From: Macrostomum lignano
Taxonomy: Eukaryota
DNA length: 64,000 nucleotides
Reading direction: 5' to 3'
Assembly: GCA_002269645.1 (NCBI GenBank)
Contig: NIVC01001747.1
Span: 62,001 to 126,000 of the forward strand
The notes under the pieces are model-generated. The model saw only the letters and a list, made by a program, of their open reading frames with translations. It made no database searches and had not been told where the DNA came from. Of this stretch, positions 2,670 through 62,769 are shown one piece after another; position 1 is the first letter of the stretch; the number at the start of each line of letters is the position of its first letter. Made by a program: the position numbers and the translations under genes.

Positions 2670-5600
2670 ATGGGTCAAAGTCAAAGTCGCCATCAGCGCA
2701 TCACCATAGACAACATCACGCCAACTGCTCGAGGTGCTGCAACCGAAGGGCACTTATCTGACATCCATCAGGACATTTGCACTGCTGTACGCAAGGGTCG
2801 CTTTGAAGACGTCAAGTTACTCGTTCCACAAATCAATGACCAATCAAACAGGGACACATGCTGCATCAATGCTGCCAAAAGAGCTGCATTTTTTGGTTAC
2901 TTTGAAATCGTCAAGTTTCTCGTCCCACACATCAATGACCAATCAAACAGGGACACCTGCTGCATCAAAGCTGCCAAAAGAGCTGCATTGTTTGGCCGCT
3001 TCGAAGTCGCCGAGTTTCTCCTATCACAAATCAATGGAAAATCAAACAGGGACACCCGCTGCATCAATGCTGCCGAAAAAGCTGCAGTCAAGGGTTACTT
3101 TGAATTCGTCAAGTTTCTCATCGCACAAATCAATGACCAATCAAACAGGGACACCTGCTGCATCATTGCTGCCGAATCTGCTGCACGTAATGGTCGCTTT
3201 GAAATCGTCGAGTTTCTCGTTCCACAAATCAGTGACCAATCAAACAGGGACACCTGCTGCATCAATGCTGCCAAAAAAGCTGCAGTCAATAGTCACTTTA
3301 AAATCGTCAAGTTTCTCGTCTCACAAATCAATGACCAAAAGAACAGGGACACCTGCTGCATCAAAGCTGCCGAAAAAGCTGCAGTCAACAGTTACTTTAA
3401 AATGGTCAAGTTTCTCGTCTCCAGTCACTTTGATATCATCAAGTTTCTCGTCTCACAAATCAATGACCAATCGAACAGGGACACCTGCTGCATCAAAACT
3501 GCCGAAAAAGCTGCAGACAATGGTCACTTTGAAATCGTCAAGTTTCTCGTCCCTCAAATCAATGACCAATCGAACAGGGACACCTGCTGCATCAATGCTG
3601 CCAAAAAAGCTGCAGTCAAGGGTTACTTTGAAATCGTCAAGTTTCTCGCCCCACAAATCAGTGACCAGTTAAACAGGGACACCTGCTGCATCAAAACTGC
3701 CGAAAAAGCTGCAGAAAATGGTCACTTTGAAATCGTCAAGTTTCTTGTCTCACATATCAAGTGCCAATCAAACAGGGACACCTGCTGCATCAAAGCCGCT
3801 GAAAAAGCTGTATTTTGTGGTCAATTTGAAATCGCTGAGTTCCTCATCGCGTGTCTCTCAAGTCCCGATCTAAAAGCGAATCTCCGTTTTCAGTGCGCAG
3901 TCGCGGCTTGCTCTCGTCTTCGCGAAAGTGTCATTGCCTTCCTCGGCGGCCTCGAGCCCGACTGGCTTTTCCAATCCAACACCATCCTCAGCTTCACTGC
4001 AGCAATGGCCATCGAAGGCAGGAACTCTGTTCTCAACAAAACCCTCTCTCGAATGAAGTCGGCTCAAATCACACACCTGCTTCGTCTCTCCATCTCTCAA
4101 AGACACGTCGCTCTTGCCGCCACACTGCTCAATCATGAGCGATTCAGCACACAGAATGTCGATATCCCAGATAAAAACACCGGAGCCACCGCTCTCATGC
4201 TCGCAGCTGATGCAGGTCATCACGAGCTCATTCACAAACTCATCGATCTCGGCGCCTCACTGCACGCTCAAGACACTCACGGTCGCACTGCTCTCTCACG
4301 AGCCTGCCAAGCCGGTCACGTGCGAGCAGCGAAGACTCTCATCGACAATGGAGCCGATGCCAGCCATCGAGACAGTCAGGGCCTCACGTGTGCGCAGCTC
4401 GCACAGCGATTTGAGCAGAGTCAGGTGCTGCGGCTGCTGAATCCCAACAAGTCAGTTTGCATTAGTTGCCATTCTACTCGCAATCACTTCGCTACCTTAC
4501 CTCGCTTTCCTTCACACATTCCAGAAACACACAGCAACCCCAGCCAGACGCTCACTGCCTCCATCCGTGAGTCTGGCCGCTTTTACTGCCACCTGCCTTC
4601 CTTGGATTGAGTGTCCGGGTCGGTTTGGGTGCCCAGTCCCGAGTACAATATATATTATACGTGATATAACAGGCGTTGTGACACTCTGTCTGTACTTTTA
4701 TGAATACGAGCAGGCGTAACGACGCTCTGCGATAATAGTCCGATCCTTCTGGTGTTGTGACACTCAGAGTTCACGCTGCGGCTCGAGGTGTGGTGACACT
4801 CTCGGGTGCTTCTAGTCTCGAGACTGTAGGTTGTACACACTATATAGAGTAGACGGTACAGTACTACAAAAGCTATATGATCTACCGGCGTTATGACGCT
4901 CTGGCAAGAACTCAGCCTAACAAGCTCCCAGAAAAGAAAGAACTCAAACAGCAGGCGGCTTACCAGTGGCCAAATCGCTATTGCGTTCATTGATTCGCTC
5001 GTTGTACAGTGCAGGTTCTAACCTCCGAGATTCTTCTTAAGGCTCTTGTGTTTCTTAGCTAGAGTATTCAATAGCTAGAGTTGCTGTTTAACTGTCTAGT
5101 CTCGCACTTGTACTCTGCGAGCACACCAATTCCAAAGCACGAAACAGCACGAGCAAAACAAACAGAACAAACAGAGAAACAGAGAAACAGAGAAACAGCG
5201 CGAAGGGCGTGAGCAAGGCCTAGAGCCGCATTAAATAATAACCGAACCCTGGGGCCGATGGCCCCACCGGCTAAGCTCACCAAAACAAACCACGCCGGCC
5301 CAGCCAATCAAAACCCCGCCTAAGGGGCGAGGGGCTGCACCCGCGCCAAAGCTGGCCCGGCCGCAGCCAACCAGCCCTGAGCACGGGGCAGGGGCACGGC
5401 TGGGGAGGGGCACGCGCAAAGCACGGCCGGCGGCCAGACCCTGCCACGCCCGCCAACCCCCCAACCAGCCCCAAAGTGCAACGCGCCCTGCCAACTGACA
5501 AGGGCGCATGCACTACATGAGCTTGGCCACTGCAATTTTAAAATCCGTCTCTACTGACTGCACCTGCACTCTGACCTTCAATACTTTACACACTCGCATC

Positions 5601-8600
5601 CTTCCAGACTCTCAGACGAGGAGCTGCATCGACTGCTCAGCGATGCGGGATTCACTGACCAGAGAGCAAAGTGTCAGCAGAGACTGGCTGACAGGCTGGA
5701 AGAAGTGGCTCGAGTCCTCACACAGGATGACGATCGCAGGCAGATGACGGGCAGCTACGCAGAGGGCTGGGCCAACAGTCTGGTGCAAGTGAACGGCAGG
5801 ACAGCTGCAGACTCGGACATTGACTGGACTGTGCTGGTTGCTGGGCAGCAGTTCCATCTGGAAGGTGGCTGCAACAGAGATCGGCAGCAATGCAGAGACG
5901 CCACTCGGCTGCAGGTCACGGAGGGCCACGCACAGGTTGCAGTGGGAGCAGGTGAGTGAGGCTGGGTTCATCATTAGAATGTTGAGATCCGCATGCAACT
6001 AGGAGCAAGTTAACTTTGCTCAATTTCAAATTCGCCCGAGTGGCGAACAAGAGTCCAGCAGCTTCTGTGACTGCGAATGTCGGCTTGGGTGCTGAAACAA
6101 GCGGCAGGCGAAATTGAAAAGAAAACTCTGATGCCGACTGGCTGAGCCGGGCCATTGGGTTTTGAATTCACAGGCTCCGATTGCAGCAGAGTGGGTGCAG
6201 CGGTGCTTGGGTGACCCACGGTAGGCGGCACGGCTCTGCGTAGGTGCCGCTGCTCTCAGTTCAAAAATTCAAATAAAATTGGAAAAGCCGCCCTGACTGC
6301 CTGATTGGTGCCTTGCTGCTGGCACTGAGTCCTGATGATGCTTGATCAGCTGTGCTGAGCTGCAACCTGATGAAGCCAGAGCAGCTGAAGCTGAAGCTGG
6401 GCTAACTTAGTGGGTGCAGAGGCTCATGCCTCACAAATGCATATATTTGGCTCTTCAGAGAGCGTGTAAATTCTGTGGAGTGCCAAAAATTGCCAAAGCT
6501 TTGGCGGGTGCCAAAAATCTGCTGAATAAAATTGGAGGACTGAATAAACATTAATAGCATTAGCGCGCATGTGTACATTTGGCGAGTGTGTAAATGGCGT
6601 TTCCGCCAAAACATTTATTGCAGGATTAAATAAAATTCTACCCTTCGTTTCAAAGGATATTTTGAAATACTTAAAACTCCAAACGAGCCAAAAGAAAATC
6701 TGCAGTTTCAAACCAACCAATTTTTTCACTCGACACAAAGCGACTCTCCTCTCACTGCGCTCTTCAGGCAGCCAACCAGCAGTGACAGCCACGGCGTGCG
6801 GTGTGCGGCCTGCACAGGACACGTGCCATGCGATCCTGTGCTGCAGCAGATTCTGTAAGGACAGGATTAAAAAACTGACTGCAAACAGGAATGATGTTCA
6901 CCTCGTTAGGGCGACCAGACCGAGCTCGACCAACGAGCTCAGAGTGAGCTTCAGCTTTCAAGAGAAAGACATCATGAGAGACCTGAGCACAGTCCAGGGC
7001 CAGCTGTTCACACTCATCAAGTTCATCTTCAAGAGACACTTGCCGCTCACTCTGGACACACCTGGACTCAAGACCTACCATGCAAAGACTCTGCTATTCT
7101 TCATGCTGGAGAAGCATGGCACCCATCCTAAAAATGAGGCTTGGCAGCCCCACAATCTGATCGCTCTGCTCAAGGAGTCTCTCGACATGATGCTGAGCTT
7201 CATCGACTCGAGTAGCTCTCCCGATGAGTGCATGCCGCACTTCTTCATGCCCGACGCTCCGCTCTACTTCAAGAACGCTGGAATCGGCAGCAACTTCGAC
7301 AACACGAAGGCGAGGGTACGAGACCGACTTTGTGAGGTGATAAGCGACATCGGCGGAGTGGTCGAGCAGCTGAGGAGACTCGTGAGACCTCTGCGGTCAG
7401 AGAAGTTCTACTTTCACCCGTTCACTCTGCTGCCTCTGACAGCGCCGCCTGCTGTCACGGAGATCAGGAAAGGAAGTGGCTCTCAACAATTGTACTGCAA
7501 GTTCGCAGATGTGTACAGTTTGGTGCACCAGTGTGTGAGCGAGCTGCAGTCGGAATCGAGCGACAGAGACACCCTGATGAGGCAGCTCAGTCTCCTGCAT
7601 GAGCTGCAGTGGTGCAAGTGCGCCGCCCTGTGCATGACCGCCATGGCGCATTTGAAGTTCGGAGAATCTGAGAAGGCTGAGAGACTCGCGATGGAGCTTC
7701 AGAGACATCAGGTTGAATCAGGGTTGATGCCACAGGATATTCAAAACAACGAGAGCTGGTACATGTTCAATAAAATACTGCCAGAAGACTCAGACTGGGC
7801 GTGGAGGTTCTGCCTCCCCTGCGACTCTCCGCCTCGCTTCCCATTCCTTCCCGAGTTCACGCAGACTCTGTTCACAGCCAGACTGTCGCAGCCTCTCTCC
7901 TCCCACCTGTACGTGAACTTCCGCTGCCTGAGCTGGAGTCTCCAAGCTGAGCTGCTCCGCAATCGCGCACCTGTAATCGCATTCGATCATTGGATTGAAC
8001 AGCTGCTTGGAGACCCGGACTTGGAGGAGCTGCTCACTCTGGCTCACTACAGCGACTGCCGCGAGCACGTGGAGCTCAGCCTGCAGCAGATGGAGATGAT
8101 CGAGAAAGAGAGACGCGTCGCCATGGAGACGCAGGACAAGGAGAAGATCGGCTGGGTCAGGCAGAAGCGGTGGCGAGTTTCGAACCGCAGCGGCAGTGAC
8201 AGCGGTGCTCACCGCAGCAGGGAAGATGAGGAGCGGAGGCTGTGGGCGATGGCGAGGCGAGACGGGACCGACTTGGGTCACCTGGTTGCCATGGAAACTG
8301 CAGCGGAGCAGAGAAACAGATGGACTCACAGATGGACTCACGTGTACAGTGTGGTGCACCAGTGTGTGAGCGAGCTGCAGTCGGAATCGAGCGACAGAGA
8401 CACCCTGATGAGGCAGCTCAGTCTCCTGCATGAGCTGCAGTGGTGCAAGTGCGCCGCCCTGTGCATGACCGCCATGGCGCATTTGAAGTTCGGAGAATCT
8501 GAGGAGGCTGAGAGACTCGCGATGGAGCTGCAGATACATCAGGTTGAGTCAGGGTTGATGCCACAGGATATTCAAAACAACGAGAGCTGGTACGTGTTCA

Positions 8601-9385
8601 ATAAAATACTGCCAGAAGACTCAGACTGGGCGTGGAGGTTCTGCCTCCCCTGCGACTCTCCGCCTCGCTTCCCATTCCTTCCCGAGTTCACGCAGACTCT
8701 GTTCACAGCCAGACTGTCGCAGCCTCTCTCCTCCCACCTGTACGTGAACTTCCGCTGCCTGAGCTGGAGTCTCCAAGCTGAGCTGCTCCGCAATCGCGCA
8801 CCTGTAATCGCATTCGATCATTGGATTGAACAGCTGCTTGGAGACCCGGACTTGGAGGAGCTGCTCACTCTGGCTCACTACAGCGACTGCCGCGAGCGCG
8901 TGGAGCTCAGCCTGCAGCAGATGGAGATGATCAAGAAAGAGAGACGCGTCGCCATGGAGACGCAGGACGAGGAGAAGATCGGCTGGGTCAGGCAGAAGCG
9001 GTGGCGAGTTTCGAACCGCAGCGGCAGTGACAGCGGTGCTCACCGCAGCAGGGAAGATGAGGAGCGGAGGCTGTGGGCGAGGGCGAGGCTGCGGCGAGAC
9101 GGGGCCGACTTGGGTCGCCTGGTTGCCATGGAAACTGCAGCGGAGCAGAGAAACAGATGGACTCACGCCAAGCTCAGTCGGATGAGACTGGAGAAGCTGG
9201 AGAGACTTGATGGAGCATCCGAACTACTCCAAGTCAAATCGCAAAACCAAGGTCGCACAAGGAAGACTTTTGTTTTATTTTGTTTTGTTTTGCTGTGGTT
9301 TTGCTTCTGTTTGTCAGTAATTTTTTTACAAAACGAGTACATCGATAGCTGGAGAGACGTTGTTGAATCAAACTGCTTATTCTGA
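2670..9385 (+). CDS. Ankyrin-array + Mab-21/cGAS-like nucleotidyltransferase (cGLR) fusion gene, copy 1; exons 2670-4450, 5608-5951, 6768-9385 (~1580 aa)
   Basis: Donor AA|GTCAGT at 4451 (phase 2) matches acceptor CCTTCCAG|A at 5607. Donor G|GTGAGT at 5952 (phase 1) matches acceptor CTTCAG|GC at 6767. Joined length is 4743 nt = 1581 codons. Exon 1: ten 33-aa ankyrin-like repeats plus canonical ankyrins (GATALMLAADAGH, GRTALSRACQAGH). Exon 2: GSYAEGW...ADSDIDW. Exon 3: QDTCHAI, VHLV, LRVSFSFQEKDI, LIKFIFK, GLKTYHAKTLLF, MPHFF, which are Mab-21 hallmarks. Confidence 0.85.
2832..3854 (+). repeat. Coding tandem array of ten 99-bp (33-aa) ankyrin-like repeats plus one 33-bp partial repeat
   Basis: Consensus INDQSNRDTCCIxAAxxAAxxGHFEIVKFLVxQ repeated 10 times, with an extra HFDIIKFLVSQ after repeat 6. 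Confidence 0.9.
4612..5517. mobile_element. Solo LTR (906 bp) in intron 1 of cGLR copy 1
   Basis: Begins TGT and ends ACA, flanked by a 4-bp direct repeat TGAG (4608-4611 and 5518-5521). The paralogous intron in copy 2 has the empty site (GGTTGAG CTTGGG, ~15835-15846). A 4-bp TSD is typical of Ty3/Gypsy elements. Confidence 0.8.
7511..9172 (+). repeat. In-frame 831-bp tandem duplication of the C-terminal helical domain in cGLR copy 1
   Basis: GTGTACAG... starts at 7511 and 8342 (period 831 = 277 codons) with near-identical translations (VYSxVHQCVSELQ...RWTH). The junction carries a duplicated 12-mer AGATGGACTCAC. Confidence 0.9.
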
Positions 9386-9985
9386 TGCACGCTGACTTGA
9401 TGAGGGTTCTGCGTGATCTGCATGAAAGCCCCTGGAATTTCTGGCTATTGGGTTTAGTTTGTCTTTTAGCTTTTTTGGATTGAGCGCATCGAGTTCGAGC
9501 AGCCCTCCCGCTATGAACTGCAGTTTTATACATTTGCGCTTTAATTAAATTCACACCGCATACTGAACTGCTTTTTCTCTTCAAACTGCGTGTCTGCTTT
9601 GATGCGGGCTTTTCGATTTTGCGATTATGTTCTGCATGTTCTTTATGTTCAATGCACAATTGTTAATGCTGTTTAATGAAATATTCAAGCCAAATGTACA
9701 GGTACATGTAACATTTGTTTGCATCATCCTGCAAAATTTAAAGGTCAGCTGGGTCAGGGAGAAGCTGAAGAGACTTGATGCAGCAGCTTGAGTTTAACTC
9801 GGAATTTTTAAGACCTCTCTGGCGTTTTGAAGAAAATGTGCGGCATATATTTCTGATCACTTTTAGATGTATATTTTTGCTTAAACTATTGTGTGCACAT
9901 GCTCCTTATTCTTTAAGCACCTGCTATCAGAATCATCTCAAACAGTCTGCAAATTTATTTCATCATGTACCCCTGTACCCTGCAG

Positions 9986-11296
9986 TCTGACAGCCTGACA
10001 GCTCCCTCATGAACAGTCACTGACTGACAGCCTGACAGCTCCCTCATGAACATTCAGTGACTGACAGCCTGACAGCTCCCTCATGAACATTCAGTGACTG
10101 ACAGCCTGACAGCTCCCTCATGAACATTCAGTGACTGACAGCCTGACAGCTCCCTCATGAGCATTCAGTGACTGACAGCCTGACAGCTCCCTCATGAACA
10201 TTCAGTGACTGACAGCCTGACAGCTCCCTCATGAACATTCACTGACTGACAGCCTGACAGCTCCCTCATGAACATTCAGTGACTGACAGCCTGACAGCTC
10301 CCTCATGAACATTCAGTGACTGACAGCCTGACAGCTCCTTATGAACATTCAGTGACTGACAGCCTGACAGCTCCCTCATGAACATTCAGTGACTGACAGC
10401 CTGACAGCTCCCTCATGAACATTCACTGACAGACAGCCTGACAGCTCTCTCATGAACATTCAGTGACTGACAGCCTGACAGCTCCTTATGAACATTCAGT
10501 GACTGACAGCCTGACAGCTCCCTCATGAACATTCAGTGACTGACAGCCTGACAGCTCCCTCATGAACATTCACTGACTGACAGCCTGACAGCTCCCTCAT
10601 GAACATTCACTGACTGACAGCCTGACAGCTCCCTCATGAACATTCAGTGACTGACAGCTCCCTCATGAACATTCACTGACTGACAGCCTGACAGCTCCCT
10701 CATGAACATTCAGTGACTGACAGCCTGACAGCTCCCTCATGAACATTCAGTGACTGACAGCCTGACAGCTCCCTCATGAACATTCAGTGACTGACAGCCT
10801 GTCAGCTCCCTCATGAACATTCAGTGACTGACAGCTCCCTCATGAACATTCACTGACTGACAGCCTGACAGCTCCTTCATGAACATTCAGTGACTGACAG
10901 CCTGACAGCTCCCTCATGAACATTCAGTGACTGACAGCCTGACAGCTCCCTCATGAACATTCAGTGACTGACAGCCTGACAAGCTCCCTCATGAACATTC
11001 ACTGACTGATAGCCTGACAGCTCCCTCATGAACATTCACTGACTGACAGCCTGACAGCTCCCTCATGAACATTCACTGACTGACAGCCTGACAGCTCCCT
11101 CATGAACATTCACTGACTGACAGCCTGACAGCTCCCTCATGAACATTCAGTGACTGATAGCCTGACAGCTCCCTCATGAACATTCACTGACTGACAGCCT
11201 GACAGCTCCCTCATGAGCATTCACTGACTGACAGCCTGACAGCTCCCTCATGAACATTCAGTGACTGATAGCCTGACAGCTGCCTCATGAACAGCA
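9986..11296. repeat. 37-bp minisatellite (TGACTGACAGCCTGACAGCTCCCTCATGAACATTCAG/CAC), ~35 copies
   Basis: Directly visible period of 37 (e.g. 10021, 10058), with variant and shortened units. Confidence 0.95.
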
Positions 11297-12181
11297 ACTA
11301 AAATTCGATTATTTTATTTACTGCTGTTTCGTATTGATCAAAAACTATAAAAATAAAAAATTCCCCAATCTGTACTTCAGTAGCTGAAGTTGCTTTGCTC
11401 AAATGCGCTTGTAGTATGTTTGCTTGCTTTTTACAGCTCACAAATAGATTTAAAAATAATGGAAGAGTTTGTGCATGAGTTCTTAAACTCATCTTTGGTG
11501 TTTTCTGCCCCACAATGCTGCCTTCAAAGTTCCGCGTGGTGAGAGATTTTATGATTTTTCAGTTCACGAAACAAAATACCTTAGTGATTACCTCAATATA
11601 ATATGAGAATCATACAGTGAATCAACTGTAAAATCCCTGAAGACAAGAATAAAAGTACATAAAAGGCTGCAAGGTCACAATAACATCAAAGGTCAGCCGG
11701 CACTTCCTCAGCAAGCAGGCAGTCGCAGAATGGCCGGTGGCTGCCTGCAGCGCCAGCAGCGGCACCTCCTGAACTTCCGGCTGTGGGTGGCCGCTCGGCT
11801 CTGCAGCATCTTTTTACATCTAGAATGTCATTTACATCGGCATTCTTTTTACAGATAACTTTGCCTTGAGACATCAAAGCACTTTGGTGCAGCGAACACA
11901 CCGTAAGGATTCGATTCAAAGAACTACGAGCACTTAGTATTCCTTGAAGGATTCTCCTGTGCTTGCGGGTTTTGTGTTCAATGGATAGCGCATATTGATG
12001 CAGAACGTGTTGTGAGGTGTGAGGAACTCTAAGAAAACTGAATGCGAATTACCGAAAAATCCCAGTAAATAATCAAAATATCAAACTACATCCTACATGC
12101 TTTTGTGACATAGTGCTGGCCTCACTGCCGAAGTCAATCACGTTTTTCCACGCACTGTGTCTTCACCATCACTGACGCCAT

Positions 12182-12378
12182 GCCGCAATGCAGGGGCAGC
12201 AGGAAAAGGGCGCCAATGCCAGGCCGCACTGCAGGGGCAGCAGGAAAAGGGCGCCAATGCCAGGCCGCAATGCAGGGGCAGCAGGAAAAGGGCGCCAATG
12301 CCAGGCCGCAATGCAGGGGCAGCAGGAAAAGGGCGCCAATGCCAGGCTGCAATGCAGGGGCAGCAGCAAAAGGGCGCC
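12182..12378. repeat. 41-bp GC-rich tandem repeat, ~5 copies
   Basis: GCCGCAATGCAGGGGCAGCAGGAAAAGGGCGCCAATGCCAG at 12182, 12223 and onward. Confidence 0.9.
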
Positions 12379-12730
12379 ATGGCTGCGGTGCGGAGGCTGC
12401 ATTTGGGCGCCGGTCCTCAGCGGCTGTCCTGGCGGGGTTGCCAGAAGGGCAGCTCAAAATTTCAGTGGGGCCGCAGCAGCCCCTCAGCTCAGCCGCTGGA
12501 TTCGCCCCTGCTGTGGCCGCGTGCAGGGGCGAAAATGGCCGCGTGCCGCACTGCTCAAACTCAAACTGCAGCAGGATGGTGGAGACAAGCAGACAGCAAA
12601 AATTCTGTGTGTGGCAGGTGGGCGAGCGGTCAGCCCTGGCTACAGAGGAGACATGGAAGCTGCCAGAACAAAAAAGTGTTCTGCATTAAATTTTTTTAAG
12701 GTCAATAATAACTTTCAAAAATTTTACAAC

Positions 12731-13170
12731 GAAACTCGTGCTCAGATTCCAAAGTGAAACTCGTGCTCAGATTCCAGTGAAACTCGTGCTCAGATTCCAG
12801 TGAAACTCGTGCTCAGATTCCAGTGAAACTCGTGCTCAGATTCCAGTGAAACTCGTGCTCAGATTCCAATGAAACTCGTGCTCAGATTCCAATGAAACTG
12901 GTGCTCAGATTCCAATGAAACTCGTGCTCAGATTCCAATGAAACTCGTGCTCAGATTCCAATGAAACTCGTGCTCAGATTCCAGTGAAACTCGTGCTCAG
13001 ATTCCAATGAAACTCGTGCTCAGATTCCAGTGAAACTCGTGCTCAGATTCCAGTGAAACTGGTGCTCAGATTCCAATGAAACTGGTGCTCAGATTCCAAT
13101 GAAACTGGTGCTCAGATTCCAATGAAACTGGTGCTCAGATTCCAATGAAACTCGTGCTCAGATTCCAATA
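12731..13170. repeat. 23-bp minisatellite (GAAACTCGTGCTCAGATTCCAGT/AAT), ~19 copies
   Basis: Direct inspection. Confidence 0.95.
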
Positions 13171-13817
13171 AAGCTTGTCTCAGTTGTGAAGAATCTGATC
13201 TGAATCCCGGCTTTAAAGTGAGACTGAAATGGCCTATTTTAATTTTGCTATTCCGATATTCCGAAAGCGTTTTGGACACGATTTTCCTGCCAATGCGCAG
13301 TTACATGTACTCATTGGTGTGAGGGCTAAATGCTTTCTTTTATGTTTCCTCTGTCTGCCCAGTCAGCCCTCCCAATGTGCGGGAATGATTTTCCATTGTG
13401 GCCGCTGCACAAACTCGCATTAAAAAGACCCCACTCTGCCGTGCGTTTTTTTGCTCTGCTTTGCAGTCTGGTTTTTCTCTCCCAGCCTTTCCTCATTCCA
13501 ACCAGCGTTCGGTATTTCTGTAGCAGCCCGCCGCTGCTCTTGGCTAGAACTTCTGCCCCTCTGCCGTCTTCTGTCTCTTCCTTTATCCCAAGTATCAGTG
13601 TTGGCTTGCTGCAGAGCCTCCTGCCTGCTTTTGCGAGTTCCGCCTTCTCTGCGGCCTGGGAGTCTCTGCCTGCCGCTCCGTCAGCAGACTGGCGAGTTCA
13701 TAATCATAACTGGCGATCGGTGAGTCCTGCTCTGCCCTGCTTCAGTCTGCTAGGTTTGCATTGGAGTGAGCTGTTAATTGGGCTTGCGATTGCTCACTGA
13801 CTAAGAGTCACTATCTA

Positions 13818-13819
13818 AG

Positions 13820-13862
<43 letters not shown>

Positions 13863-13869
13863 CAGATAT

Positions 13870-13922
<53 letters not shown>

Positions 13923-13929
13923 CAGATAT

Positions 13930-13986
<57 letters not shown>

Positions 13987-13993
13987 CAGATAT

Positions 13994-14046
<53 letters not shown>

Positions 14047-14047
14047 C
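13818..14047. repeat. (GATA)n microsatellite with periodic GACAGATATA interruptions
   Basis: Interruptions at 13861, 13921 and 13985. Confidence 0.95.
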
Positions 14048-14441
14048 AGCACGGATGACGCTACCATTTAAACCGTGCCTAGTGAGGCTCAGATTGCTGG
14101 GGCAGGCGGTAGGTAAACAGGTTGAACATTTCAGCATAATCTGAATTTTAGACTGCCTGACCGGGGCAATAAGGGCGAACTGAGCTGCAGACAGCACCGG
14201 TGACTGACAGCTGCTACTTTGACAGCAGCCAAAGATCAAAGGTAAGATTCACCTCTCCATCTCTCCCTTCCTCTCTTTCTCTCTCCCTCCCCTTTTTATC
14301 TCTTCCTGCCTTTCTCCTTTCCGCCCCCTCTTTTTCCTACCCTCTTTCTCAATCCCATTTTCTCGCTCCTCTCTTTCTCCCTTCCTCCTTGCTTTTTCTC
14401 TCACTTTTAGCCTTTCACCTCCAATGCCGCTCTCCAGAACA

Positions 14442-17048
14442 ATGAACCAAAATCAAAGTCGCCATCAGTCCCTCACCACCGACAACATCACGCAAACTGC
14501 TCGACGCGCTGCAACCCACGGGAACTTTAACGACATCGTCGAGGCTACTTGCACTGCTGCAAGAATTGGTCACGTTGAAGACGTCAAGTTTCTCGTCTCA
14601 CAAATCAATGACCGATCAAACAGGGACACCTGCTGTAATAAAGCTGCCGAAAGCGCTCTACTTTATGGTCACTTTGAAATCATCAAGTTTCTAGTTCCAC
14701 AATTCAATGACCAATCAAACAGGGACACCTGCTGCATCGAAGCTGCCGTAAATGCTGCAGACCGGGGTCACTTTGAAATCGTCAAGTTTCTTGTCTCACG
14801 AATCAATGACCGATTAAAAAGGGACGCCTGCTGCAAAAACGCTGCCGAATGGGCTGTACTTCCTGGTCACTATGAAATCATCAAGTTTCTAGTTCCACAA
14901 TTCAATGACCAACCAAACAGGGAGACCTACTGCACCAAAGCTGCCGGTATTGCTGCAGACCGGGGTCACTTTGAAATCGTCAAGTTTCTCGTCATGCAAA
15001 TCAGTGACCAACTAAACAGGGACACCTGCTGCATCAATGCTGCCAAAAACGCTGCAGAAAAGGGTCACTTTCAAATCGTCGAGTTTCTCATTGCGTGTCT
15101 CTCGAGTCCGGATCAGAGAGCGAATCTCCGTTTCCAATGCGCAGTCGCGGCTTGCTCTCGTCTTCGCGAAAATGTCGTTGCCTCCCTCGAACTCGAGCCC
15201 GAATGGCTTTTCAAATACAGCTCCATCCTCAGCTTTACTGCAGCAAAGGCCATCGAAGGCAGAACCTCTGTTCTCACAGATACCCTCTCTCGAATGCAGC
15301 CAGATCAAATCACACACCTGCTTAACATCTCAATCTCTCAAAGACACGTCGCTCTTGCCGCAAAACTGCTCAATCATGAGCGATTCAGCACACAGCATGT
15401 CGATCTCCCAGAAGACAACACCGGAGCCACTGCTCTCATGCTCGCAGCTGATGCAGGTCATCACGAACTAATTCACAAACTCATCGATCTCGGCGCCTCG
15501 CTGCACGCTCAAGACACTCACGGTCGCACTGCTCTGTCACGAGCCTGCCAAGCCGGTCACGTGCGAGCAGCCAAGACTCTCATCGACAATGGAGCCGATG
15601 CCAGCCATCGAGACAGTCAGGGCCTCACGTGTGAGCAGCTCGCACAGCGATTTGAGCAGCGGCAGGTGCTGCGGCTGCTGAATCCCACCAAGTCAGTTGC
15701 TATTAGTTGCCATTCTACTTCCAATCACTTCGCTACCTTACCTCGCTTTTCTTCACACATTCCAGAAACCCAAAGAACCCGCAGACAGTCGCTCAACGCC
15801 TCCATCCGTGAGTCTGACTGTCTTCCTCCCTTGGGTTGAGCTTGGGCCACGCTGCAAATCCACCTCCACTGACTCCTTTCTCACCTCTCCACCCAGACTC
15901 TCAGACCACTCCGAGCAAGACCGCCGTCTCAGCGAGGAGCTGCATCGACTGCTCAGCGAGGCGGGATTCACCGAGCAGAGAGCAAAGTGTCAGCAGATAC
16001 TGGCTGACTGGCTGCAACAAGTAGCACAAGATGTCGCACAGAATGACAATTGCAGGCAGATGACGGGCAGCTACGCAGAGGGCTGGGCCAACAGTCTGGT
16101 GCAAGTGAACGGAAGGACAGCTGCAGACTCGGACATTGACTGGACTGTGCTGGTTGCTGGGCAAAAGTTCCATCTAGAAGGCGGCTGCGATGGACAAGAA
16201 AGCTTCCGGGATTCCTGCAAAGACGCCACTCCGCTGCAGGTCAAGGAGGGCCACGCACAGGTGCCAGTCGGAGCAGGTGAGTGACGCTCGGCTCCCTATG
16301 CCAATCCATGAATTGCTCAATCGATTTTTTATTCAATACGAAGTTTCTGAATTTTTGAGTTCACAAGTTTAACCTGAATTTAAAACCATTCTGAAAAACA
16401 TCCAGCTCTCATTCCACTTTGAAAAAAATTCTGGCAACCAATCAGGCAACTTGTTTGATTGTCTTTGGAATTGACTTCCAGTCCTTCAGTTACTTTCAGC
16501 CTTCTCAACAGCTCATCTCAACAGACACTTAGTGTTCTTTTCATTGTATTTCGTGACTATTTAAGTTAATGAGCACGAGGTAATATACGCCAGACAATCG
16601 TTGTCACGGACGGAGACCGCTGATTATTTATCCAATGTACTGCCTCAGCACCTCAGATGTTATGATTACAATGCTTACTATGCGCAGTACGTTAAAATTT
16701 GATCTTAAAGGAAGTTTAATAACTTTTCGCTTTCTCTCCCCATCATCAACCCCATAGCACTTTAACGAATACTTTGCTTCATTCATTGATTACAGTAGTA
16801 GCACTGACACATGAGCAGAACGAACTCAACCAGCACATTCAAGCAGTTTCAAACAAACTTATATTATTCACTCGCCATAAAGCCACTCTCCGCTAACTAC
16901 GCTCTGCAGGCAGCCAACCTGCAGTGACAGCCACGGCATGCGGTGTGCGGCCTGCACAGGACACATGCCATGCGATCCAGTGCTGCAGAAGTTTCTGCAA
17001 GGCCAGAATGATAAAACTGATTCCATTCAGTATTTTTGATGGTGATAC

Positions 17049-17082
<34 letters not shown>

Positions 17083-18629
17083 AATGATTATGATTATGAT
17101 GGTGATGATGATGATGATGATGATGACGACATTAATTATAAAATTAAGCATTATGGCAAAGTTCACCTCGTACGGGCGACCAGACCGAGCTCGACCAACG
17201 AGCTCAGAGTGAGCTTCAGCTTCCAAGAGAAAGATATCATGAGACGGCTGAGCACAGTCCAGGGCCAGTTGTTCACACTCATCAAGTTCATCTTCAAGAG
17301 ACACTTGCCGCTCACTCTGGACACACCTGGACTCAAGACCTACCATGCAAAGACTCTGCTCTTCACAATGCTTGAGAAGCATGGCACAGATCCTGAAACT
17401 GAGGCTTGGAAGCTCCACAATCTGATCGCTCTGCTCAAGGAGTCTCTCGACATGATGCTGAGCTTCATCGACTCATCAGCTCGCCCGATGAGTGCATGCC
17501 GCACTTCTTCATGCCCGACGCTCCGCTCTACTTCAAGAACGCTGGAATCGGCGGCGACTTCGAAAACACGAAGGCAAGGGTTCGAGACCGACTTTGTGAG
17601 CTGAGAAGCGACATCGGCGGAGTGGTCGAGCAGCTGAGGAGACTCGTGAGACCTCTGCAGTCAGAGAAGTTCTACTTTCACCCGTTCACTCTGCTACCTC
17701 TGACAGCGCCGCCTGCTGTCACGGAGATCAGGAAAGGAAGTTATGCTTCAGAGTTTTACTACAAGTTCGCAGACGTGTACAGTGTGGTGCAACAGTGTGT
17801 GAGCGAGCTGCAGTCGGAATCGAGCGACAGAGACACCCTGATGAGGCAGCTCAGTCTCCTGCATGAGCTGCAGTGGTGCAAGTGCGCCACCCTGTGCATG
17901 ATCGCCATGGCGCATTTGAAGTTCGGAGAATCTGAGGAGGCTGAGAGAATCGCGATGGAGCTACAGAGACATCAGGCTGAGTCAGGGTTGAGGCCACAGG
18001 ATATTCGAGACGAGAGTAGCGACTGGAGTATATTGATAAAATTGCAAACAGATTCAGACTGGGCGTGGAGGTTCTGCCTCCCCTGCGACTCTCCGCCTCG
18101 CTTCCCATTCCTTCCCGAGTTCACGCAGACTCTGTTCACAGCCAGACTGTCGCAGCCTCTCTCCTCCCACCTGTACGTGAACTTCCGCTGCCTGAGCTGG
18201 AGTCTCCAAGCTGAGCTGCTCCGCAATCGCGCACCTGCAGTCGCATTCGATCATTGGATTGAACAGCTGCTTGGAGACCCGGACTTGGAGGAGCTGCTCA
18301 CTCTGGCTCACTACAGCGACTGCCGCGAGCACGTAGAGCTCAGCCTGCAGCAGATGGAGATGATCGAGAAAGAGAGACGCGTCGCCATGGAGACGCAGGA
18401 CGAGGAGAAGATCGGCTGGGTCAGGCAGAAACGGTGGCGAGTTTCGAACCGCAGCGGCAGTGACAGCGGTGCTCACCGCAGCAGGGAAGATGAGGAGCGG
18501 AGGCTGTGGGCGAGGGCGAGGCTGCGGCGAGACGGCGCCGACTTGGGGCGCCTGGTTGCCATGGAAACAGCAGCGGAGCAGAGAGAGAGCTGGACTCACG
18601 CCAAGCTCAGTCGGATGAGACTGCAGTGA
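14442..18629 (+). CDS. Ankyrin-array + Mab-21/cGAS-like nucleotidyltransferase (cGLR) fusion gene, copy 2; exons 14442-15691, 15897-16276, 16910-18629, with one apparent 1-nt deletion at ~17475
   Basis: The ATG at 14442 is homologous to the copy-1 start (AGAACA-ATG). Donor AA|GTCAGT 15692 and acceptor ACCCAG|A 15896 (phase 2); donor G|GTGAGT 16277 and acceptor CTGCAG|GC 16909 (phase 1). Same NTase and Mab-21 motifs as copy 1. Total 3350 nt is one base short of a multiple of 3, and the sequence reads ATC GAC TCA TC AGC versus copy 1 ATC GAC TCG AGT AGC. It is either a pseudogene or carries an assembly indel. Confidence 0.8.
14604..15098 (+). repeat. Coding array of five 99-bp ankyrin-like repeats (cGLR copy 2)
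   Basis: Five 33-aa units of the same consensus as copy 1, with different variable residues. Confidence 0.9.
17038..17130 (+). repeat. (GAT)n microsatellite read in frame as poly-Asp within the NTase exon of copy 2
   Basis: Translates to DGDTDDDDDDDDDDDNDYDYDGDDDDDDDDD and is absent from copy 1. Confidence 0.85.
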
Positions 18630-25469: not shown

Positions 25470-26210
25470 CTTGACATCTCAGCAATTTCCACAGTAAGCC
25501 TTGAGATCTCAGAAATTATCCCAGTAAGCCTTGAAATCTCAGCATTCCCCCAGTAAGCATTGAAATCTCAGAAATTATCCCAGTAAGTTTTGAGATCTCA
25601 GCAATTCCCCCAGTAAGCCTTGACATCTCAGCAATTCCCCCAGTAAGCCTTGAAATCTCAGCGTTCCCCCAGTAAGCATTGAGATCTCAGAAATTATCCC
25701 AGTAAGTTTTGAGATCTCAGCAATTTCCCAAGTAAGCCTTGACATCTCAGCGATTCCCCCAGTAAGCCTTGACATCTCAGCAATTCCCCCAGTAAGCCTT
25801 GACATCTCAGTAATTCCCCAAGTAAGCCTTGACATCTCAGCAATTCCCCCAGTAAGCCTTGAAATCTCAGCAATACCCCCAGTAAGCCTTGACGTCTGAG
25901 GAATTCCCCCAGTAAGCCTTGAGATCTCAGAAATTATCCCAGTAAGTTTGGAGATCTCAGCAATTCCCCCAGTAAGCCTTGACATCTCAGCAATTCCCCC
26001 AGTAAGCTCTGAGATCTCAGCAATTCCCCCAGTAAGCCTTGACATCTCAGCAATTCCCCCAGTAAGCCTTGAAATCTCAGTAAGCATAGAAATCTTAGCA
26101 ATTCCCAGTAGGACTTGACCTCTCAGCAATTCCCCCATTAAGCCTCGACATTGCAGCAATTCTCCCAACGCAGTAATTAGCCTTGACATCCCAACAACCC
26201 AACTCCCCTC
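25470..26210. repeat. 30-bp satellite (CAGTAAGCCTTGACATCTCAGCAATTCCCC), array 1
   Basis: Period 30 (e.g. 25741, 25771, 25801), decaying into degenerate copies up to ~26900. Confidence 0.9.
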
Positions 26211-28128
26211 TCCCAAGAATTCAGCAATCGCTTTATAAGCCTTGATAACTCAGCTATTCCCCCATGAGTCTTTAATTGATTGTTGACAGCGGTTAATCTA
26301 TGATTGAACCAAAACTGACCCTAAGCCCCCAAACCTACCCATAAGTGAGTCTTGGCATGTTAGCAATTTCCACTATGAGCCTTGAGCCTCAGCATTAAAG
26401 TAACTTCCTCATAAGGTTTGTAATCTGAATTTCACCGAAAGCCTTGACCTGTCAGCAATTTCCCGTAGAGCCAAAGCATTTAAGTAATTCGCCCCAAGAG
26501 CCTTTAATCTTGGCAATTCCTCGATGGGTCATTGATGGTTGTCACGACGATCGCTCTATAATTTAACCAAAACCATAACCCTTAACCTGTAGTCGAATTT
26601 CAGCAATTCCCCAATGAGCTTTGGAAATGTTAGCAATTTCCCCATGAGCCTGAAAATTGAGTGACTAACCATTTGATATCTTGGCACTTGCATTTCAACA
26701 ATTAATTTCAGCAATTTCACAAATGAACCTTGAATTCAAAGCAATTCTCCCCAGAATGACATAATTATAGCAATTCCCCTTTGTCTTGATATCTTATAAA
26801 TCCTTCCATGAGTATTGATATATCACAGCAATTTGCCATACCAGCATTATGCTCGTAGCAATAGTCTTAGCAGTCTTAACAGTCTTAGCAATTCCCAATG
26901 AGACTTTTACCTTCGAAAGGGCACTTTTTTATGATTGATATGATGATTCTTGTTCGCTTTTTCTTGCCTTTGCGTTTTCTTCTCTTTAAAAGAAGTTTGT
27001 ATTAAAAAATACAACATTTCAGTATAGCTTTCTGCAGTTTAGCAATGGTTCACCAGCAGTTTAGCAATGCAGTTTAGCAATGCTTCACCAGCAGTTTAGC
27101 AATGGTTCACCAGCACTGTTTTGCACAATCAGTGAGCAGATGGCCACTAATCTTTGCATATGGCCATATTGCTTCTGCATAATCAAAACCATTTAAAATG
27201 TTTTTGCAACTTGCAGGGTAAATTTAATCTCCTTACATATTTATTATTTTATTATATGCGTCAGATTAGCACTGCTCTCCCCGATTAGCGCTGCTCACCC
27301 AGATTAGCAATACCCTTTGCAAATTAGCACTTACAGCAGATAAGCACTGCTCTTGAAGCTTAGCGTAGCCCCAGCGAAAGTATATATAAAATAAAATGTT
27401 AAAAATTTGCATGAATTCCCATAGGAAACAATGATTATTGTCACAAAGATAAATTCGCTGCTTCAATGTAGACTCGAATTGCCGACCTTCTACTAAAAGC
27501 CTTATACTATTCTAGAAGTTTAGTAACTTCGCACTTTAAAGTTAACCCCCTCCCCCCCAGAAATCGGCAGTTATCCCCACAACAACCTGAAATTAGCTAT
27601 CACTTCTAATCCCGCAAACAGACTGCAGTCATACTCTTGGCAGCCTGCAGGTACTACTGTCTACAACTTTCATTAGCATCGGCAAACTACAATAATTCAC
27701 TCAGCAGTCCGCAGTTACTCGTATCCCCTCAACAACTTGCTCTGCTATACACTCATAAGTCTGGAGGAATACCTCAGCAGTTTTTTTCAATTTTTCCCTT
27801 TGCAGTCTGCATGAATGAGTCTTCTCAGCAATGATTCTTTCAGTATTCTGAAAATTTTCTCAGCATTTAGTAGGGCTCACTAATCAATTTTCGATACATA
27901 TCGGCTATCTTTTGCGCAGCTCAGCATTTAGCAGTTTTTTTACAAATCAAATTTAAAATGCACTGGCTGAAATCAAATCAAATTCAAATTGACAAAATCA
28001 AGTTTGTTTAGCAACTTGTGTTGAATAGCAAAAATCATTCATTGAGTGTGGCTTACTAATTAATAAAAAATGATTCACTTAGTTGAGGCGCTAGGTATAA
28101 ATGAACTAATTTATTTAATTTTAATTAT

Positions 28129-42069: not shown

Positions 42070-42816
42070 TCAGTTAAGAGGCGACAGACACTCGCACAGG
42101 ACATTAGAAAAATTAGTTTTTGTTTCGCCGGCATCCATAAGACCAATAAAATAGACATGTCTTCCAATTACACTCTCACTACCTTCGTAGTTATTCGGCT
42201 GGCCAGTGGCCCAAAAAGCGGGATCAACAGTGGTGTTGCAGCTCACCCAGTACCAGCCGCCAGCCGGCTCCGCACTGCCTTCTGGCTGGAGGCCTCCGAG
42301 CCAGATCGATTGTCCAGAGCTGTAGTTCGAGTAGATCCATTCCACGTGGCTCATCTCCTGCTCGCTGGTTACGTCGGCCATGATGACCAGACCGCTCTCT
42401 GACTCGCACTTCTGCCTGCTCGGCCACCACGTCCCAATGCCAGAGTACAGCTTGTACTTCACTCCGCACAGGTCCATGCCGTAGCCAGACGGACACAGCG
42501 CGCCCGCCTCGAGTCCCGGCCGCTGCTTGACGAACACCCGGCCTCTCCTGGAGCAGCCGCAGCTCCTCACCGACTTGCTGCACTTGTCGAACACGAATAG
42601 CTGGCACGGACCGTCAGCCAGGCTGAACGCCTGACAGCGCAGCTTCTCGGAGCACAGAGCAGCGCACCCAATTTTGCTGTCCTCGTTCGGGTAGGACTCA
42701 ACAAACTCATCGTTGATGCAGAGGCTGCCGTCAATGAGGGTGTACACCTGCTGGCTGGCTGTAGTGAGGCCGAATACAAGACTCATCCAGGCCACAGTAT
42801 TCGATACGCTGACCAT
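42070..42816 (-). CDS. Secreted PAN/apple-like + C-type lectin domain protein (single exon, 248 aa)
   Basis: Hydrophobic N-terminus (VAWMSLVFGLTTA); PAN-like CAALCSEKLRCQAFSL..CQL; CTLD motifs CPSGY, TWWPSRQKC, IWLGG, WYW, FWATGQPNN, terminal LCE. Confidence 0.85.
   Translation of the reverse strand: MVSVSNTVAWMSLVFGLTTASQQVYTLIDGSLCINDEFVESYPNEDSKIGCAALCSEKLRCQAFSLADGPCQLFVFDKCSKSVRSCGCSRRGRVFVKQRPGLEAGALCPSGYGMDLCGVKYKLYSGIGTWWPSRQKCESESGLVIMADVTSEQEMSHVEWIYSNYSSGQSIWLGGLQPEGSAEPAGGWYWVSCNTTVDPAFWATGQPNNYEGSESVIGRHVYFIGLMDAGETKTNFSNVLCECLSPLN

Positions 42817-51868: not shown

Positions 51869-62769
<10,901 letters not shown>

Follow-up and report, generated by a model that had tools for sequence, protein, structure and literature searches.

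One question raised by the 64,000-nucleotide stretch of Macrostomum lignano DNA considered here (contig NIVC01001747.1, positions 62,001 to 126,000; hereafter the window, whose own numbering is used throughout) is whether two long ankyrin-type open reading frames (ORFs), which the six-frame ORF list places on the + strand at 2670-4610 and 14424-15839, are genes in themselves or the beginnings of something larger. Each is followed by shorter ORFs carrying the motifs GSYAEGW and SDID and, after these, by a long ORF containing RVSFS, KTYHAKT and PHFF, an arrangement in which an original prediction, made from the letters of the DNA, saw a tandem pair of cGAS-like receptor (cGLR) genes joining an ankyrin array to a Mab-21 nucleotidyltransferase (NTase). 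Our answer is that the two loci are probably tandem paralogues of a large, Macrostomum-specific expansion of ankyrin-fused cGLRs (ANK-cGLRs), the intact members of which would be ligand-activated NTases, the second gene of the pair being likely a pseudogene. Each gene has four coding exons, namely an ankyrin exon, a 42-nt mini-exon, an N-lobe exon with the GS and DxD residues and a last exon, which supplies the third catalytic Asp together with the helical Mab-21_C lobe and a ~250-residue C-terminal domain. In the mechanism that we propose, the intact proteins would act as ligand-activated NTases making a nucleotide second messenger, while the ankyrin array or the C-terminal domain, or the two together, might serve in ligand or partner binding or in autoinhibition.

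Both loci lie on the + strand, gene 1 at 2670-9385 and its paralogue, gene 2, with the same introns and motifs, at 14424-18629, and the tandem pair itself thus stands as predicted. In gene 1, splicing at the junctions originally proposed joins the ankyrin array, the NTase domain and the C-terminal domain in a single open frame of 4743 nt and 1580 residues. Coding exon 1 (2670-4450), which starts with MGQSQS and contains an array of 33-residue repeats, a helical linker region and, at its 3' end, three canonical ANK repeats, terminates at the donor AA/GTCAGT at 4450/4451 (here and below a slash marks the splice site). NTase exon A (5608-5951) encodes helix alpha1, the GS pair (5750-5755) and SDID (5813-5824), and ends at the donor CAG/GTGAGT, which is the same in L001 and L002, the two M. 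lignano loci used for comparison; the last exon (6768-9385) contains the third Asp (6818-6820), Mab-21_C (~7052-7264) and the C-terminal region up to the stop at 9383-9385. The corresponding parts of gene 2 are the ankyrin exon (14424-15691, with the homologous start M at 14442), NTase exon A (15897-16276; GS at 16067-16072, SDID at 16129-16140) and a disrupted last exon (16910-18629; third Asp at 16960-16962).

The four junctions, after 4450, 5951, 15691 and 16276, are all of the GT..AG type with homologous flanks, and the two loci agree in intron phase, which is 2 after 4450 and 15691 and 1 after 5951 and 16276; this bears out the identical positions and phases claimed for the pair. Two M. 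lignano paralogues, P0001 in L001 and P0005 in L002, were compared by mapping the proteins back onto the DNA; the introns of these NIVC01 models fall at sites homologous to those of both window genes, and the splice-site sequences (..GA/GTCAGTTGCC, ..GCAG/GTGAGTGAGGCTGG, cgctctgcag/GCAGCCAA) are nearly identical. The GenBank annotation of the M. lignano assembly goes back to a genome-guided transcriptome made from RNA-seq (PMC5730564). The models P0001 and P0005 are accordingly built from RNA-seq transcripts, and for close paralogues there are thus spliced transcripts in which ankyrin exons are joined to NTase exons. The notion that such genes are hidden by splicing holds for prokaryote-style ORF calling only, the fused architecture being already present in public eukaryotic annotation.

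Although the four sites are sound, the proposed junctions between the ankyrin and NTase exons overlooked a conserved mini-exon, which in both loci is 42 nt long, keeps the frame and has AG/../GT flanks. That of gene 1 (4525-4566) carries ..KNTQQPQPDAHCLHP.. and separates introns of 74 nt (4451-4524) and 1041 nt (4567-5607), while that of gene 2 (15766-15807) carries ..KNPKNPQTVAQRLHP.., closely resembling ENPQHLQAAAQRLHP of P0001. A homologous mini-exon is used in P0001 (L001 11078-11119) and in P0005 (L002 12283-12336) and is skipped in other M. lignano models (P0002, P0008). The mini-exon may be optional or alternatively spliced and, since P0002 and P0008 skip it, the direct junction first proposed may be one isoform. 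Intron size varies widely in the ANK-cGLR family: P0001 has an intron of ~17 kb (L001 11582-28692) where the window genes have 816 and 633 nt, and a Ty3/gypsy-type pol gene lies near P0001 in L001.

The next question then is what kind of enzyme, if any, the NTase exons encode. GSYAEGW, SDID and the third Asp, in AQD, are present in both genes, as are RVSFS, KTYHAKT and PHFF, and the Pfam model Mab-21_C (PF20266) is matched at 30.2 bits, the gathering cutoff being 24.1. A phmmer search of the PDB with the NTase region gives weak matches to the C-lobe only (MAB21L1 E 0.007, cGLR1 0.1, cGAS 0.3), and a profile built from 10 family sequences finds cGAS at E 9e-6 and Sp-cGLR1 at 2.6e-5. Against 1.84 billion representative proteins the profile gives 1094 matches at E<=1e-3 and 81 at E<=1e-30, and the proteins of the next tier (E about 1e-14) have both the N-lobe model PF03281 and PF20266. 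Aligned by hhalign to one such PF03281+PF20266 protein, the family profile reaches a probability of 98.7% with the third Asp aligned. With single Mab-21 or bivalve cGLR sequences the hhalign alignment began no earlier than the third Asp or the C-lobe, and for this reason the homology of the N-lobe rests on structure prediction and Foldseek.

The AlphaFold2 model of gene 1 residues 595-1229, made with an alignment of 27 paralogues, has a predicted local distance difference test score (pLDDT) of 83.2 and a predicted TM-score (pTM) of 0.84, and the top 50 Foldseek matches to it in the PDB are all cGAS, MAB21L1, Sp-cGLR1 or MiD51 at probability 1.00 (E 2e-7 to 5e-5, target-normalised TM-scores 0.45-0.59, 315-397 aligned columns), such that the structural check against cGAS and cGLR1 suggested with the original prediction came out in its favour. 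In the model, a strand at 44-47 leads into G48-S49, D70 and D72 open a strand at 70-84 and D132 lies on a later strand, an order which, as modelled, is that expected of a Pol-beta-type NTase. The GS, SDID and third-Asp residues are kept in about 40 paralogues. All five catalytic positions reach 90% conservation or more in the 27-sequence alignment; the 10-sequence alignment, which reaches down to 32% identity, shows no variation at G48, S49, D70 and D72 and at least 90% conservation at D132. By modelled fold, sequence homology and catalytic residues, the predicted proteins are of the cGLR/Mab-21 class of CD-NTases. H83, C88, H107, C139 and C140 (~5855-5930 and 6839-6844) are likewise invariant or nearly so across the whole ANK-cGLR family, and these His and Cys positions of the NTase lobe might form a structural metal site.

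Compared with cGAS (human and mouse) and with Stylophora Sp-cGLR1 (PDB 8gjy), the window proteins show the same bilobed NTase fold, the same GS/DxD/D residues and, in the C-lobe, the WR.SFS-like (RVSFS) and Y-H-.-K-T motifs. They differ from both in sequence, with 12-16% identity, in their longer GS-DxD loop and in the addition of an ankyrin array and of a C-terminal domain of ~250 residues which has no significant match in the PDB, and from cGAS in that its Zn-thumb motif is unrecognisable in them.

The ankyrin nature of the first exon is evident from Pfam, which gives 160 bits for Ank_2 (7 stretches), 148 bits for Ank_4 and 105 bits for Ank on exon 1, the tandem repeats of ~33 residues matching the ANK profiles with a period of 99 bp in the DNA. 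In gene 1 the array extends over 2792-3810 (99-bp, 33-residue unit; 83-87% matches by Tandem Repeats Finder, TRF) and in gene 2 over 14568-15089, and the number of units by TRF is ~10.3 and 5.3, respectively, with about 3 in P0001; the array is in this sense variable, as had been predicted. Units within one gene are very alike, their differences clustering directly before the G[HY] motif, and the gene 1 array includes one partial unit of 11 residues, which points to unequal crossing-over. The array may have a role in ligand specificity, as put forward in the original prediction.

The region of ~250 residues that follows Mab-21_C is conserved across the ANK-cGLR family and is the least understood part of the protein. 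Modelled alone it has a pLDDT of 83 and a pTM of 0.84, and a comparison of this model with the PDB returned nothing significant, the best match, at E 0.55, being to TPR-like proteins such as IFIT1; the high pTM of the two-domain model suggests a defined packing of the C-terminal domain onto the NTase. In gene 1 this region has been doubled by an internal tandem duplication of 831 bp in the last exon, which remains in frame and gives two C-terminal domains, at 7523-8332 and 8354-9166, with 96% amino-acid identity and a synonymous divergence (dS) of 0.018; the duplication could be real or could be an assembly artefact. The stop codon of gene 2 and P0001 (..SRMRLQ*) is lost in gene 1, where the frame runs on into T-rich sequence.

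The tail of gene 1 (9170-9385) begins with 'KLERLDGAS', like the alternative tail of P0003 and P0004, and continues into a T-rich stretch coding VLFCFVLLWFCFCLSVIFL. A C-terminal transmembrane anchor was considered for this stretch (Kyte-Doolittle 2.9) and rejected: since it is T-rich and lies beyond the stop of gene 2 and P0001, the hydrophobic tail is probably read-through of a 3' untranslated region. A strongly hydrophobic C-terminus nevertheless occurs in P0019 (Kyte-Doolittle 3.5), and P0024 has one that is less so (1.65). An extra intron excising 'RWRVSN...SRMRL' was likewise discarded as an explanation of the two tail forms, as no GT..AG pair yields a QK/LERL junction; the tail of P0005 is contiguous in the genome, and the two forms are treated as an indel between paralogues. 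At the other end of the protein, MGQSQS of gene 1 (2670-2690) and MGQNQS of P0001 fit the N-myristoylation consensus MGxxxS, and some family members may, judging from such termini, associate with membranes.

How far, then, is this pair of genes novel? A search with the non-ankyrin part of gene 1 gave matches of which the best 41 are almost all named Macrostomum lignano, the top ones with 85-86% identity, and many of these are already annotated with ankyrin families and Mab-21_C (PF20266). The sampled strong profile matches are all from M. lignano, in accordance with the lineage-specific family that had been proposed, and M. lignano loci match the introns and the flanking satellite at 89-96%. 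An exact look-up of four window ORFs in a collection of 15 billion proteins found none of them, and the copies represented by gene 1 and gene 2 are thus absent from public protein sets; elsewhere in the 64-kb window there are no further copies of the family. The top match to gene 1, P0001, is BOX15_Mlig016402g1, or PAA68676.1. It has 85% identity to gene 1 in the NTase and C-terminal regions and the same four exons and intron sites, and shares the order of ANK, NTase, Mab-21_C and C-terminal domain, the catalytic motifs and the MGxxxS N-terminus; it differs in having fewer ankyrin units, whereas gene 1 has a doubled C-terminal domain and an extended tail and gene 2 is frameshifted.

The family and its architecture were already catalogued before this analysis by Li et al. 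(2023), who surveyed ~3,000 cGLRs and state that most platyhelminths have Mab21-like proteins only, that 87% of cGLRs are single-domain proteins and that fusions to TPR or ankyrin modules occur in some; PAA68676.1 is listed with Ank_2 in their Table S2 (PMC9980059). Accessory-domain fusions among invertebrate cGLRs, which the original prediction had invoked, are accordingly on record. The coral and other invertebrate cGLRs with ANK or TPR fusions (Li et al. Fig 1C/4C) resemble the window proteins in carrying repeat-type modules on a cGLR core, modules that Li et al. read as domains of ligand or partner interaction (PMC9980059). They differ in that the window array consists of an atypical, recently amplified 33-residue unit (NRDTCC..AA..GHFEIVKFL) and in that the Macrostomum family is strongly expanded in one genus of a mostly cGLR-free phylum. 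With gene 1 and gene 2 the catalogued expansion gains two paralogues that had not been annotated, in a flatworm that serves as a model of regeneration and allows transgenesis, and the importance of the window is in this respect modest; what ANK-cGLRs sense, make and signal through, and what their conserved C-terminal domain does, are questions of the whole family, which is already known to specialists, and are not specific to the window.

Several observations weigh against the proposed reading of the pair, and they concern the NTase domain, the enzymology, the strength of selection and the state of gene 2. Of the two profile searches suggested as a check, that with Mab-21_C passes its cutoff, as given above, but the N-lobe model Mab-21 (PF03281) has no match to the window protein at E<=1. 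The spacing from GS to DxD is 20 residues. In cGAS and OAS this spacing is shorter. The bivalve cGLRs in Table S3 of Li et al. have 9-10 residues at this place. No enzymatic activity is known for any member of the ANK-cGLR family. Table S3 lists five cloned M. lignano proteins, including PAA68676.1 and PAA93208.1, in a screen of 140 enzymes, and its 'Note' column, which is filled for 15 characterised active enzymes, is blank for all five (PMC9980059). The ligands in this screen were poly I:C and dsDNA only, and for many cGLRs Li et al. note an apparent lack of activity in vitro, the probable reason being that the ligands are not known (PMC9980059).

In this context the proteins could be regarded as scaffolds or adaptors with an NTase fold, like MiD49/51 and MAB21L1/2, rather than as synthases, the ankyrin and C-terminal domains binding other proteins, an alternative which we judge unlikely. 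It draws on the fact that Foldseek also gives MAB21L1 (5eom, 5eog) and MiD51 (4oaf) at probability 1.00, that no M. lignano member is marked active in the published screen and that shrimp Mab21 proteins are reported, in a 2026 paper, to activate IKK-epsilon 'outside the canonical nucleic-acid sensing paradigm' (PMC12928593). The Mab-21 fold is indeed common to the Macrostomum family, MAB21L1/2 and MiD49/MiD51, but the Macrostomum family keeps the catalytic triad, and the conservation of G-S, D-x-D and the third Asp at 90% or more down to ~30% identity would be unexpected in a dead active site. The degenerate active site of MAB21L1/2- or MiD49/51-type proteins is not found here, and with the acidic triad conserved the window proteins are not filed with the non-catalytic Mab-21 subgroup. 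MiD49/51 are not known to have a functional catalytic triad. According to Li et al. the same is true of Mab21L1/2/3, which have no predicted functional active site (PMC9980059), whereas the Macrostomum proteins have one. We accordingly retain the reading of the intact ANK-cGLRs as putative NTases.

As to selection, gene 1 and gene 2 differ by a dS of 0.06-0.18, with a ratio of nonsynonymous to synonymous divergence (dN/dS) of 0.38-0.67 in the ANK-C and NTase parts and of about 1.0 in the C-terminal domain, and gene 1 differs from an M. lignano paralogue by a dS of 0.11 with a dN/dS of 0.68. Because dN/dS is high and dS low, constraint on the two copies is weakly demonstrated, and the values fit either a young family of fast turnover or partial decay. 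Directly 3' of gene 1 there is a 37-bp satellite (9987-11293; 35.8 copies by TRF), and the same satellite lies 3' of the M. lignano paralogue at L001 36237-36991 (93-96% identity by blastn), so that the duplicated unit seems to be gene plus satellite.

Such a unit invites the view, to which we accord little weight, that neither copy is a functional gene, both being remnants in decay of a segmental repeat, gene and satellite together, that was amplified not long ago and in which the motifs persist only through the youth of the duplication. The low dS between the copies and the dN/dS of the C-terminal domain would be in line with this, as would the frameshift and microsatellite insertion of gene 2, the odd internal duplication of gene 1 and its loss of the stop codon found in gene 2 and P0001, the absence of the exact proteins from the 15-billion-sequence collection and the co-duplication of the flanking satellite. 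Nevertheless, gene 1 is open over 1580 codons in four exons with intact splice sites, the dN/dS in the NTase and ANK-C parts is 0.38-0.67 and closely related M. lignano paralogues are transcribed, all of which speak for gene 1 as an intact member of the ANK-cGLR expansion.

Gene 2 is in a different condition. By alignment of the last exons it has, relative to gene 1, a 1-bp deletion after 17474, inside Mab-21_C and just before PDECMPHFF, and this motif with everything downstream is out of frame with the catalytic exons; the catalytic frame ends at a stop at 17602-17604, and the homologous frame runs from 17475 to the stop at 18627-18629. The original prediction of a complete catalytic signature in both genes is in consequence right as regards the motifs and not as regards function, for the frameshift leaves the signature of gene 2 functionally incomplete. 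Gene 2 further has an in-frame (GAT)n/poly-Asp insertion of 123 bp (~17030-17155; TRF core 17037-17126), which falls in a loop of variable length among paralogues, and its N-terminus, MNQNQS (14442-14460), has lost the Gly of the myristoylation consensus. As assembled, gene 2 is probably a pseudogene, and its frameshift, microsatellite insertion and changed N-terminus fit birth-and-death turnover. Taken together with the tandem copies, the variation in repeat number and the internal duplication, such pseudogenisation makes the loci an illustration of birth-and-death evolution in a candidate innate-immune receptor family.

The frameshift could, on the other hand, be an assembly error, which would count against gene 2 as a pseudogene, and it can be argued more broadly that all the defects are assembly or consensus errors in a redundant genome, that the gene 2 frameshift and the gene 1 duplication are unreal and that both genes are intact. 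Near-identical duplication is extensive in the published M. lignano assembly, at 180-312 Mb (PMC5730564), and the C-terminal copies of gene 1 differ by a dS of only 0.018. We nonetheless find this explanation rather improbable, since the deletion is not in a homopolymer and lies among several substitutions, and since the in-frame 123-bp insertion and the altered N-terminus of gene 2 make several independent changes. A likely pseudogene beside an intact gene 1 is the state of the pair that we prefer.

Whatever the state of gene 2, the function of the intact members has to be considered against what is reported for flatworms, in which cGAS and STING were described as lost on the basis of Schistosoma (Wu et al. 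2014; PMC4117786); in the literature on Macrostomum, searches for STING, cGAS and cGLRs brought up nothing of relevance apart from the supplements of Li et al. Synthesis of cyclic dinucleotides and a role in immunity, which were central to the original prediction, are functions that ANK-cGLRs may have. In sum, the observation behind that prediction is confirmed in part, and its interpretation, partly supported by the fold and the conserved residues, was overstated. A more specific proposal, which we regard as quite doubtful, is that Macrostomum has a large sensor expansion of its own (at least 81 clusters at 50% identity) in which a fast-evolving ankyrin array and the new C-terminal domain take the place of nucleic-acid binding in ligand sensing or signalling, and in which the output runs through a product or receptor different from the canonical pair of cyclic GMP-AMP (cGAMP) and STING. 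If true, this would be an expansion of sensors within a phylum from which cGAS/cGLR-STING signalling is otherwise believed to have disappeared.

The remainder of the window contains other features. Two long ORFs on the - strand, at 25575-26216 and 57441-58166, were rejected as genes, being made purely of repeats, with (E/M)ISRLTGGIA units and (SQSV)n. The sequence between gene 1 and gene 2 includes further tandem repeats, a 41-bp unit x5 (12177-12379), a 23-bp unit x20 (12727-13183) and (AGAT)n x57 (13820-14046). A Cys-rich ORF of 248 residues on the - strand (42070-42816) starts with a hydrophobic leader and shows, by eye, motifs resembling those of C-type lectins (IWLGG.., GWYW), with no Pfam match at E<=0.001. 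Upstream of gene 1, again on the - strand, lies a THAP zinc-finger ORF of 238 residues (1154-1870; Pfam THAP, 48 bits), which may be derived from a transposase, and the same strand has, at 53323-61540, exons encoding a guanylate cyclase of the receptor type, in which Pfam recognises ANF_receptor, a protein-kinase-like domain, HNOBA and Guanylate_cyc.

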